A DNA stretch of 63,286 bases, counting the filler, from Sluysia triapertura (Eukaryota), in assembly GCA_046118255.1 (NCBI GenBank). It is 5 parts of 5 records of this genome, joined end to end, with 100 filler letters (N's around TTAATTAATTAA, not from the genome) between each part and the next. Parts side by side here need not be neighbours in the genome. Positions count along the whole stretch, not along the records: positions 1 to 12,303 come from JBJNIA010121416.1; 4 more parts are not named here. One strand, given 5' to 3'. The position numbers and the translations under genes were made by a program. Shown piece by piece: positions 316 through 12,186 of the stretch. Numbering within the stretch: position 1 is the stretch's first letter; each line of letters begins with the position of its first letter. A model generated the notes under the pieces. That model searched no databases. It worked only from the letters and a program-made list of their open reading frames with translations, and was not told the DNA's origin.

Positions 316-620
316 TGTTACACTATGATTCCCGCCTAACAATTTTATTTTATTACAGTCAATTATACTATCATTATTCTAAGCGGTATTTTAGGCCTGT
401 ATCTCAACATATTTCACCCAATTCAATTATGTTTAACTTCAAACATCTTGTAAAAAATTAATTTCAACATCGAAAGGGTATTCGATATGTGGGCTCACCA
501 AATGTTAGACTTCATATAATAACTGACCGGCTGTGCAGTTCGATGCTCTGACTAATGAGCTGTTAGCCCCGTCATTTATGCCATCATTATTTTATGACAC
601 TTTAGGCCTGTACCCCAACA
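316..620 (-). mobile_element. Miniature LTR element (TRIM) with tRNA-like LTR, copy A: two LTRs, PBS and short internal region
   Basis: On the minus strand LTR1 runs 620-503 (TGTTGGGGTACAGGCCTAAA...tRNA-like...GAAGTCTAACA). It is followed by TT and the PBS-like TGGTGAGCCC, a ~90-nt internal region ending in a purine-rich tract, and LTR2 at 409-316 (TGTTGAGATACAGGCCTAAA...TAACA, internally deleted). Confidence 0.75.
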
Positions 621-5580: not shown

Positions 5581-5606
5581 AAAATTTTTTATGAATTACT
5601 AAATAA

Positions 5607-5720
5607 TAAAATACATAATTTGTAAAATTGTTGAGATTATCCAACCAGTGAGTGGAAAAAGGGTGAAGAATCGATACAAAATGATGAAGTGAGTATGTGG
5701 AGTGAGCATGTTGAAAGTGA
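5607..5720 (+). repeat. ~115-bp direct repeat, copy 1 (copy 2 at ~7124-7238)
   Basis: Near-identical sequence AATACATA...GATTATCCAACC..GAGTGGAAAAA..GTGAAGAATCGATACAAAATGATG..GAGTATGTGGAGTGAGCATGTTGAAAGTGAA lies on both sides of the SLC4 exon. Confidence 0.9.
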
Positions 5721-6072
5721 ATAAAAAACTGTTCCACTGTTCATAAAAAATGGTTTAAGTAGGCAGCGTTGGGTTTAAAAAATTGGTTCCAGCACACTTT
5801 GCAGTGTTGTATATGGACATGCTGCGTTTTATACTTAGTTTACTTTCAAAGATTATTAAACAATGGTTTATAAGACAGTGCTCGATATTATTATTATAAT
5901 CATTGAGCTATTTTATTAATAATAATGTTCTACAATTTTAAAACATCGATTTCGCCGATAAAACACATGGCAAATCAAGCAAATGAACCCTGCCGAGAGA
6001 TTGTGAAGATATATGTGCATGTATGTCAAATATATCTACTGTGGAAACACTTTTTGTATTTATATATTTATA

Positions 6073-7021: not shown

Positions 7022-7599
7022 GTAATCTTTTAAATCTATATTTATCAATATACAGCCAAGTAAGTTATATAAGATGTAAAAATATGAGTATAGGTACGAT
7101 GTATTTAAGTAATTAAATATTAGAATACATAAATTGTAAAATTGTTGGGATTATCCAACCGGTGAGTGGAAAAAAGGTGAAGAATCGATACAAAATGATG
7201 TTGAAATGAGTATGTGGAGTGAGCATGTTGAAAGTGAAAGCATCTATGATCATTTTGAGAATTGAAAAATACCTTAGAGTTCCAAAGACATTTGTAAGGT
7301 TTTGAGACTCTTCGGGAGCCTTGAAGCAACGTTTTGAAGCATTAAAGAACCTTTGAACTTCTGAATCTTCAGACGAATTTACGATCTAATAAACATTTAA
7401 GGATCTTTGAAATCTTGAGAAGTATTTGAATAGCCCTATAAGTAGTTGAAATCCTTGAAATATTTAAGAAATGAAATTATTGTTATTAATATTAAAGATA
7501 AATTTGATACATTAATAATTAACATAAAAAAAGTAGAACGATGAAGATGAAAACATCTAGAACCCTGTGAGTACCTTATAAAGTACCAAACAACTTTAA

Positions 7600-9625: not shown

Positions 9626-9919
<294 letters not shown>

Positions 9920-11011: not shown

Positions 11012-11191
11012 CAGTGTTCTTCAAAAGGGGGCCACAACTCACTTGTGGGTCGAGAGAAATTTCAAAGTTATAGTAAGGTATACATAAGAAAATATTCTTT
11101 AAATATGATATGCCTAATTTTTAATAATGTGTTCTTCAAAGGGGGAATGACCGAACTGTGGGTCGCTGCACAAAAAATGTGAAGACTACTG
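11012..11191. mobile_element. hAT-type MITE in the K2P intron
   Basis: Termini are CAGTGTTCTTCAAA and TGTGAAGACTACTG. The flanks GTATAAAA / GTGTAAAA form a 7/8-identical 8-bp TSD. Confidence 0.8.
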
Positions 11192-11496
11192 GTGTAAAAA
11201 CGGAAATATCTATTCTGTCATTTGTTCAATGATTGTGGAATGATTGGAATATGTACAAAAGAGTAAAATTGATATTTCTTTCTCCACGTAGTCCTTAATT
11301 GAAGACCTAATTGAAGAATCGTTTACAAAATAGAAATGACTTATCAAGAGATGATTTGAAGAAAGTGATAAATAATTTAAATTAACTTTTATATTCAAAG
11401 CAAGATTGAATGCATTTGTAATATCTGTATCACAATTAATACAATTAATAAAATATCGCAAATAAACAATAAATGTTAAATTACAAATCAAATAAC

Positions 11497-11662
11497 TGTT
11501 AGGCTGACCGGAAATCGAACTCTGCACCTCTCCCTTCGCAGCCATGCTCACCAAATGTTAGACTTAAATAAATGGACAGATGCTCTGACAATTGAGTTAA
11601 TTTTATTTTATAGTCAATTATACTATCATTATTCTATTTCAATTTAGGTCTGTGCCTCAACA
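11497..11662 (-). mobile_element. tRNA-LTR miniature element, copy B (internally deleted, with TSD)
   Basis: Minus strand: TGTTGAGG...AGTCTAACA, then TT-TGGTGAGC (PBS), joined to a tRNA 3' half (GAGTTCGATTTCCGGTCAG) and CCTAACA. TAAC flanks both sides (11493-11496 and 11663-11666). Confidence 0.8.
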
Positions 11663-12186
11663 TAACCGTCAAATGACAATTAACTTAACAGAGCACTGTT
11701 AGCATAGAATTAGGAAAATAAACTAAGACTGACACAACCAAAAATTAAATTAAAGTGACCTATTTAAAAAGAAGTGATAAATAACCGTTGTCATAAATTA
11801 ATATAATGCGCGCCTTTCCGCTCAATATAATTGGTCGCGATTCCAAGAATTTCGTTAAATTAACTCACCTATGCAGTATATTTTTAATCATTGTTTCTGT
11901 GAATTATAATTAAATAACACGCAATCAAAGCACACTCACTAAGCCGATTATTTTGTCAAACCAACTTAAATTAAACCTGACAAGCCATGCAAAGTGATTG
12001 GTTCGTATCTAGAAACGAGAATTACACTTACACTGGTAAATTTACAATAAATTTCAATAAAATATATTAATTACAGAAATAATTATCGCAGTTTTAATAC
12101 ATATATGTTGAAATATCTTTATATCACTAAAGTATTCCGTTAAAGTAAACGTTAAATTTTATTGTTCAATAAACATGTCACTTTAA

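Follow-up and report, generated by a model that had tools for sequence, protein, structure and literature searches.

A tRNA-bearing family of miniature LTR retroelements, probably of the Helenus group, in the genome of Sluysia triapertura

At positions 316-620 of the DNA studied here lies a short repeat that has the look of a tRNA-derived SINE, and that also appears to carry LTRs. What kind of element is this, how is it copied, and has anything like it been described? The window, by which we mean the whole stretch of DNA, comprises 63,286 nucleotides, filler included, from Sluysia triapertura. A sequence-only reading had answered with a family of TRIMs, miniature LTR retroelements, whose LTRs contain a tRNA-shaped cassette, and had named Helenus as a tRNA-carrying group already described. 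This is right: Helenus (TRIMp3) elements are TRIMs with tRNA-derived sequence in their LTRs (Kojima 2024, Biology 13:119, PMC10886601). The element at 316-620, which we call copy A, is most probably a dead copy of a non-autonomous, non-coding TRIM of about 400-430 bp that belongs to this group.

Copies A and B in the window

The analysed piece is extremely AT-rich (25% G+C). Both of the copies that had been placed within it, A (316-620) and B (11497-11662), are real. Copy A lies on the minus strand and has the layout claimed for it, i.e. an LTR, TT, a PBS-like stretch, a non-coding region, a purine-rich tract and a second LTR; the non-coding internal region, put at about 90 nt, measures 93 nt. 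The features of the two copies are as follows.

503-620, minus strand: 5' LTR of copy A, 118 bp, TGTTGGGG...GTCTAACA, from BLAST against the natural copies L027, L037 and L013
523-569, minus strand: tRNA-like remnant in the 5' LTR of copy A, from alignment to intact units
491-502, minus strand: TT spacer (502-501) and PBS core TGGTGAGCCC (500-491), the complement of the 3' end of a host tRNA-Trp
469-500, minus strand: putative tRNA-Trp-derived stretch (complement of positions 38-76), from the series L072, L073 and canonical copies
410-502, minus strand: non-coding internal region of copy A, 93 nt, 88% identical to the internal region of L037
410-419, minus strand: purine-rich tract GGGTGAAATA directly upstream of the 3' LTR, like a polypurine tract but weak
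316-409, minus strand: remnant of the 3' LTR of copy A with its U3-like part intact, TGTTGAGATACAGG...TTGTTAGGCGGG
11497-11662, minus strand: copy B, a single LTR of 166 bp, TGTTGAGG...CCTAACA, permuted inside
11663-11666, minus strand: GTTA, upstream copy of the target-site duplication of copy B
11493-11496, minus strand: GTTA, downstream copy of the same duplication

Copy A is badly damaged. Its 5' LTR has internal deletions relative to the 155-166-bp LTRs found elsewhere in the genome, and has neither the TATA-like stretch nor the B-box half. The tRNA-like remnant keeps the 5' strand of the acceptor stem, the D arm with the A box, part of the anticodon arm and the 3' strand of the acceptor stem; the B-box/T-arm part has been deleted. 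The match to the 3' LTR is good over about 75-85 nt but tails off once the A box has begun, at about 323-336, so that position 316 is no demonstrable terminus. Because both LTRs of copy A are defective, no tRNA is called anywhere in the analysed piece by ARAGORN or by an Rfam scan (E up to 10). The tRNA-shaped cassette is therefore not borne out by the window's own copy; it stands on better-preserved copies, which are described below. Between the LTRs, the stretch at 469-500 has four parts: the core of the PBS, a middle part that has decayed, TCGAA, and a final block, which carries mutations in copy A. A small hairpin, ATCGAA/TTCGAT, had been listed as a feature of the internal region, and this did not hold up: it is peculiar to copy A, and of 30 copies that were aligned, with that of the window among them, 28 lack it. 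There is no ORF of at least 90 aa within 316-620, and a target-site duplication sought at the flanks of copy A was not found (AAAG versus TAAT).

Copy B does have the 4-bp duplication that had been noted, GTTA on both sides. Its interior is unusual, in that an LTR end, TT and TGGTGAGC sit between the D-arm and T-arm parts. Since 8-9 nt of the start of a PBS, preceded by an LTR end and TT, lie inside its tRNA-like part, copy B is not a plain solo LTR.

The window contains some further repeats. Long (AAT)n and (ATT)n microsatellites at 1-75 and 712-765 flank copy A in inverted orientation, and these explain most of the inverted-repeat matches found in the window. Another repeat of about 110-130 nt occurs at 2069-2175 and 11040-11140, in inverted orientation and at about 84% identity; one of the two contains an insertion of 18 nt. 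A direct repeat of about 125 nt is found at 5600-5721 and 7114-7238, 93-95% identical and 1.5 kb apart.

The family across the genome

We searched the window's own assembly (619 Mb in 263,945 contigs). A first look gave 2,817 candidates for the 316-620 family, and scoring 40 of these gave 59 matches that are 74-89% identical, the window's own copy excepted. Many more copies have the order LTR, PBS, internal region and LTR. A 31-mer across the junction of LTR end and PBS, with up to 2 mismatches allowed, has 701 matches, and one across the junction of internal end and 3' LTR start, on the same terms, has 588. The last 26 nt of the LTR have 6,480 exact matches, and all three reversed-pattern controls have 0. 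The family is present far beyond chance. In contigs that carry both junctions, their spacing gives the internal region as 93 nt.

The homology between copies ends at TG...CA. In an alignment of 30 loci, the column-majority profile of which was used to locate the termini, it opens at TGTTG and closes at TAACA, with unrelated sequence outside. A pile-up of Logan contigs agrees: the 14,961 contigs of run X1, the one public run in which the window is found and a run of DNA-like contigs, that were placed on the two-LTR copy L037:512-1114 are confined between the first and last base of the element, and 106 and 159 contigs exit its two LTR ends straight into heterogeneous, unrelated flanks. Some Logan contigs also have joints at which the sequence 'goes back'. 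Such joints would be expected of a satellite-like tandem array of a unit of about 250 bp (LTR plus internal region) that does not move, and tandem arrays have been reported for one fish Helenus (Kojima 2024, PMC10886601). The chance that the family is such an array is next to negligible, and we rejected this reading: the copies are dispersed over thousands of contigs with unrelated flanks, and those assembled have two LTRs and 4-bp duplications.

A perfect 4-bp duplication surrounds 6 of the 12 two-LTR copies (TTAT, ATAA, TTAC, ATAC, AACA and GTAC), compared with a 4-bp match in 1 of 12 when the flanks are shifted by 5 nt. At this base composition a 4-mer matches by chance with P of about 0.01, so that about 0.1 matches are expected in 12 copies, and by the same arithmetic 6 of 12 has a probability of about 1e-9. 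Insertion makes 4-bp duplications. The other half of the assembled two-LTR copies have none, among them L037, whose two LTRs are different variants, which suggests recombination between copies.

How old are these copies? The LTR pairs of the duplication-bearing copies are only 80-86% identical (98% in L031, which has a truncated 3' LTR), and thus the assembled copies are old. Contigs also start or stop by the thousands 33-52 nt inside the LTR, next to unique sequence, because the assembler collapses many near-identical young copies. As thousands of identical LTR ends break the assembly, the family seems to have been active recently. We note in passing that this LTR family is a major cause of breaks in the assembly, where its copy number is therefore underestimated. 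The PBS comes next in 224 of the 6,480 exact LTR ends; since the repeat collapses in the assembly, the two numbers are not comparable, and a solo-to-full ratio drawn from them was rejected. Summed Logan depths place the LTR end at about three times the internal region, or about one to two solo LTRs per full copy, and as depth is an unreliable measure we make no claim from this.

The better-preserved copies show what an undamaged element looks like. Their LTRs are 155-166 bp long and read TGTTG...TAACA; with an internal region of 93 nt, whole elements come to about 400-430 bp, and full copies span 306-432 bp. Each LTR has an AT-rich part of about 65 nt that contains a TATA-like motif, followed by a tRNA-shaped unit of 71-73 nt, TTTT and 13 nt ending in TAACA. 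Downstream of the 5' LTR come TT, the PBS, about 80 nt more of internal sequence that ends in a purine-rich tract, and the second LTR. In most copies the tract reads GGGTGAGATA, with 8 purines in 10 positions. It immediately precedes the LTR in 588 junctions, and it falls short of typical polypurine tracts in both length and purity. The other structural features predicted by the sequence-only reading are all found in these further copies of the family: TG...CA termini at which homology ends, 4-bp duplications, a PBS that fits the 3' end of a host tRNA, and many more copies with two LTRs. The termini of the unit of about 160 bp, TGTTG and TAACA, were read correctly from the window alone. The tRNA-like unit was said to sit in the middle and in fact occupies the 3' half, at about 66-137 of an LTR of 154-157 nt.

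It is in these copies that the tRNA-shaped cassette can be recognized. ARAGORN finds cloverleaves of 71-73 nt in nine loci, mostly with an oversized anticodon loop ('tRNA-???'). In an Rfam scan of 11 loci the model RF00005 has 11 matches above the gathering score of 29 bits, the best with 52.8 bits, and the LTRs give tRNA only and no 5S; units that pass are present in both LTRs of L036, L037 and L043. Among 65 LTRs that span the unit, a match to the A box is kept in 37 and the exact B box in 32, and the spacing from A to B is 42-44 nt, the same as in real tRNA genes. CATTTT lies directly 3' of the unit in 52 of the 65, and a run of at least five T in none. Where the start of the unit could be located (35 LTRs), a TATA-like motif lies 25-26 nt 5' of it in 13 cases and is lacking in 9. 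The anticodon/variable region of an older subfamily is 8-9 nt longer. Several of the younger variants have a different anticodon stem, for which T-A and A-T variants both exist, as do both mismatched intermediates. The D arm and anticodon region of the unit presumably resemble tRNA-Cys(GCA) most closely. The scan also touched a near-perfect palindrome at L058:611-732, to which several miRNA models gave matches, on either strand and with scores far under threshold; it is probably just an inverted repeat.

Might the repeat be an ordinary tRNA-derived SINE that is moved by a LINE, with the apparent LTRs being partial tandem or nested copies? SINEs of this type (SINE2) are likewise short, non-coding and very abundant, and their tRNA-like head has A and B boxes, as the present unit does; copy A, moreover, has no duplication. 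However, in SINEs the tRNA part is at the 5' end, the tail is LINE-related or A-rich, the duplications vary in length, and LTRs, PBS and polypurine tract are lacking. A 5' tRNA head, a LINE-type or A-rich tail and variable duplications were all absent from the family copies, which also have no simple-repeat tail. Here the tRNA unit lies inside the repeat, the termini are constant (TG...CA), the duplications are constantly 4 bp, the tRNA-Trp PBS stands at a fixed 2 nt after the first repeat and the repeats are a fixed 93 nt apart. We rejected the SINE reading as highly improbable, contradicted as it is by the internal unit, the missing tail, the fixed ends, the 4-bp duplications and the PBS. 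Finally, 3,676 of the 4,692 exact T-arm 23-mers have the LTR tail next to them, and so the unit belongs to the LTR context with no sign of a separate SINE.

The primer tRNA and the pieces it left behind

A PBS should match the 3' end of a host tRNA, and this one does. A search for a matching tRNA found a tRNA-Trp(CCA) gene at L068:1450-1522, the 3' end of which is GGGCTCA, followed by CTTTATG. With CCA added, the last 10 nt of the mature tRNA (GGGCUCA+CCA) are the exact complement of TGGTGAGCCC. It is the only Trp gene in the assembly with this end, the two others ending in GAGGTCA and GTGGTCA. The common form of the PBS is perfect for only these 10 nt. A longer match is found in L064 (the same as L072), in which the LTR and TT are followed by 39 nt that are perfectly complementary to positions 38-76 of tRNA-Trp, CCA included, and then by the normal internal region. 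As the gene does not encode the CCA, this stretch was copied from the mature tRNA by reverse transcription. It is direct evidence that the host's own tRNA-Trp primes the reverse transcription of the family.

The copy of the tRNA in L064/L072 halts one base before position 37. Animal tRNA-Trp has m1G37 and m1A58, and m1A58 is the usual stop that gives a PBS of 18 nt. Three other loci, L073-L075, have a perfect 18-nt PBS and then CGAATAC and CTTTCTGA. One of these, L073, with 18 perfect nt and TCGAATAC, stands between L072 (39 of 39) and the canonical copies. The common form reads TGGTGAGCCC, ACATAT, CGAATAC and CCTTCTGAT, and the forms of L072, of L073-L075 and of the common copies are collinear. 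When the common form was compared with the complement of the tRNA, only 4 of 2,000 shuffles were not outscored, or 45 of 2,000 for the part past the first 10 nt. We infer that the first third of the internal region, about 39 nt, descends from a read-through copy of the primer tRNA.

Some other LTR-like junctions in the assembly have the PBS TGGTGACCCCGACGTG (L078, L079, L081, L086, L087, L089, L090, L092 and L095). This fits the usual animal tRNA-Trp end GGGGTCA, although no tRNA-Trp gene with that end was found in the assembly. The GC content of some of the contigs is far above that of the window, and they may be old elements or foreign DNA.

The tRNA-Trp PBS also turns up in incomplete pieces. 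A perfect 16-nt Trp PBS, searched with up to 1 mismatch, has 30 matches, about 20 of which come after the family LTR. In about 13 of these the sequence is unrelated after 15-18 nt copied perfectly from tRNA-Trp, and neither a 4-bp duplication nor a second LTR within about 1.5 kb was found. The pieces with a complete LTR are listed here.

L069, L076, L077, L080, L082-L085, L088, L091, L093, L094, L096 and L098: complete LTR, TT and a PBS of 15-18 nt

Judged by their outline, these pieces have the shape of plus-strand strong-stop DNA. At L070:1000-1260, an LTR+PBS piece abuts an ORF in antisense orientation, a relative of the env-like ORF found in L099, a Gypsy locus to which we return below.

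A different joint is seen at L071:1-1583 on the minus strand. Here an LTR end, TT and 17 nt of perfect PBS run directly into a degraded Gypsy reverse transcriptase at the motif KKDG, followed by RNase H and the start of an integrase; other Gypsy copies of this genome match the pol at 73-88% identity. The joint with the PBS falls in the middle of the reverse transcriptase, rather than at a leader or gag. This may have come about by a misplaced second strand transfer in a particle that held both RNAs, or by a later junction at the DNA level, and we take it as a hint only.

An LTR beside a Gypsy pol raises the question of whether this tRNA-bearing LTR is mainly that of some larger element, be it an autonomous Gypsy or a large non-autonomous derivative, of which the 400-bp form would be a minor product of internal deletion. 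The small share of exact LTR ends with the PBS next to them, 224 of 6,480, could be read in the same way. However, such a gap is to be expected where the assembly has collapsed, with thousands of contigs starting 33-52 nt into the LTR, and no fewer than 588-701 junctions contain the 93-nt internal region. The position of the L071 fusion in the middle of the reverse transcriptase also speaks against a larger element, as do the other LTR+PBS pieces, about 13, that run into unrelated sequence. We think this reading very unlikely, and keep to the 400-bp TRIM as the main form of the family.

Taken jointly, these loci may mean three things, and we hold the combination to be possible rather than probable: that the internal region opens with a fossil of its primer, that abortive or mis-transferred intermediates of reverse transcription have been fixed in the germ line, and that the host lies outside the animal groups in which Helenus is known. 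On the first of these, the 38-76 stretch would stem from a reverse transcriptase that ran past position 58 and was stopped at the methylated G37. On the second, the LTR+PBS loci, about 13, together with the joining of two of them to a Gypsy reverse transcriptase or to an antisense env-like ORF, suggest intermediates that were abortive or mis-transferred. If true, the family documents, in natural copies, both the making of such a miniature element and the errors in its copying. The aberrant copies are sequence-level evidence for steps in the replication of LTR elements that are usually studied only in cell culture.

Template, helper and place among known elements

How might such an element be copied? 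In the mechanism that we propose, the template RNA would start at the tRNA-like unit of the 5' LTR, with the internal promoter of this unit and the upstream TATA-like motif serving Pol III. It would read through the first TTTT and stop only at that of the 3' LTR. In this scheme the repeated R region, used for the first strand transfer, would be the tRNA-like unit, with a U3 of about 65 nt before it and the last 13 nt of the LTR as U5. The proteins would be supplied in trans by a Ty3/Gypsy element, and the first 39 nt or so of the internal region would have begun as a read-through copy of the primer. A Pol III template needs read-through because the TTTT directly 3' of the unit is a Pol III stop, which on its own would be expected to terminate the majority of Pol III transcripts after about 75 nt.

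That stop is one argument for the same TRIM having a Pol II template, transcribed from the AT-rich U3 with its TATA-like motif. The motif, which 13 of the 35 LTRs have at 25-26 nt on the 5' side of the unit and 9 lack, would suit Pol II just as well, and the use of Pol III by Helenus elements is called unproven by Kojima (2024, PMC10886601). The tRNA-like unit would then be no more than a passenger, be it a fossil insertion of a SINE or tRNA, the source of a separate small RNA, or a structured R region. We regard the Pol II template as unlikely, although well short of far-fetched. A passenger does not readily account for the cloverleaf, A box, B box and 42-44-nt spacing that are kept across subfamilies which otherwise differ. 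A further argument against Pol II, and a weak one, is that the AATAAA-like motifs overlap the TATA-like motif, which would leave almost no R region for a Pol II transcript. The family would be a good system for asking whether such elements really use Pol III.

As for the helper, the 4-bp duplication, the TT and Trp-type PBS and the L071 fusion point, if only indirectly, to an element of the Ty3/Gypsy type. The duplication, the TA-rich targets and the TT with a Trp-type PBS also agree with Kojima's animal Helenus and with Gypsy families of Nasonia. An autonomous Gypsy that shares the termini and the PBS had been named as something to look for. A first look finds 2,966 relatives of the L071 reverse transcriptase in the genome, and the four of these that were searched (the Gypsy loci L099-L102) have neither a pair of LTRs nor a Trp PBS, and do not resemble the TRIM. 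Of the four loci, L099 (2402-7384 and 2-1354) encodes a Gypsy-type pol ORF of 1,661 aa with protease, reverse transcriptase, RNase H and integrase, as well as an ORF upstream of pol. This upstream ORF matches the Monjiviricetes fusion glycoprotein profile PF24664, as does the N-terminus of the pol ORF, and L099 looks like an env-bearing Gypsy-like element.

The closest known elements are the Helenus TRIMs. These are known from fungi, one plant and six animal phyla, with LTRs of 104-323 bp and internal regions of 43-621 bp, and in animals with 4-bp duplications and Gypsy-like PBS regions (Kojima 2024, PMC10886601). The present family shares with them two short LTRs with TG...CA ends, a unit of tRNA origin that lies in sense orientation, with its A and B boxes, within the 3' part of the LTR, a short non-coding internal region, a PBS after a T or TT spacer and the 4-bp duplications that all animal Helenus have; the weak tract GGGTGAGATA may correspond to their purine tract. 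Its sizes (LTR about 155-166 bp, internal region 93 bp) are inside the published ranges. It differs in its primer, a tRNA-Trp isodecoder specific to the host; among the families of the paper, Helenus-2_SyJa alone is primed by tRNA-Trp, and its PBS is a different one. An origin of the first third of the internal region from the primer tRNA, as proposed here, is not reported by Kojima (2024, PMC10886601). Five family-specific 9-11-mers, and an internal region starting with TTGGTGAGC, are absent from the sequence file of that paper (PMC10886601), and in the literature collection searched no later paper uses the name TRIMp3 for a new case. The suggestion that the class is known while the family is new thus stands, and by these motifs the family is a new one within the already described Helenus kind.

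Other comparisons are less close. [quoted passage not shown] However, their unit is derived from 5S and not tRNA-like, and the duplications here are 4 bp rather than 5 bp. The ant element PbTRIM, with LTRs of 152-184 bp, elements of 480-781 bp and a tRNA-Leu PBS (Zhou and Cahan 2012, PMC3532108), is another animal TRIM with LTRs of similar size, AT-rich 4-bp duplications, abundant copies and solo LTRs. In contrast to the present family it is primed by tRNA-Leu, its internal region is longer and no tRNA-like unit has been reported in its LTRs.

Why should such small elements matter? Those of the Helenus type seed genomes with thousands of tRNA-like units. Predictions then contain too many tRNA genes, and Pol III factors may be drawn to the units, so that recognizing the elements improves annotation. 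The family described here is useful in that it is very abundant and apparently recently active, with a primer that is pinned to one host-specific tRNA-Trp gene.

The window also says something about the host. At 9635-9919 on the plus strand it encodes the first coding exon of a TASK-type two-pore (K2P) potassium channel, MKRQNVRTL...TVITTIG, and the host is therefore an animal. The best database identity of this exon is 76%, to an ENA contig, and named matches are at 60-66% over many animal phyla. Elsewhere the best identities are 52% for a Gypsy pol and 57% for an ABCC exon, and a look-up of exact protein sequence gave no match. Since the best protein identities are only 52-76% overall in a search of 5.8 billion proteins, they point to a host from a poorly sampled lineage.
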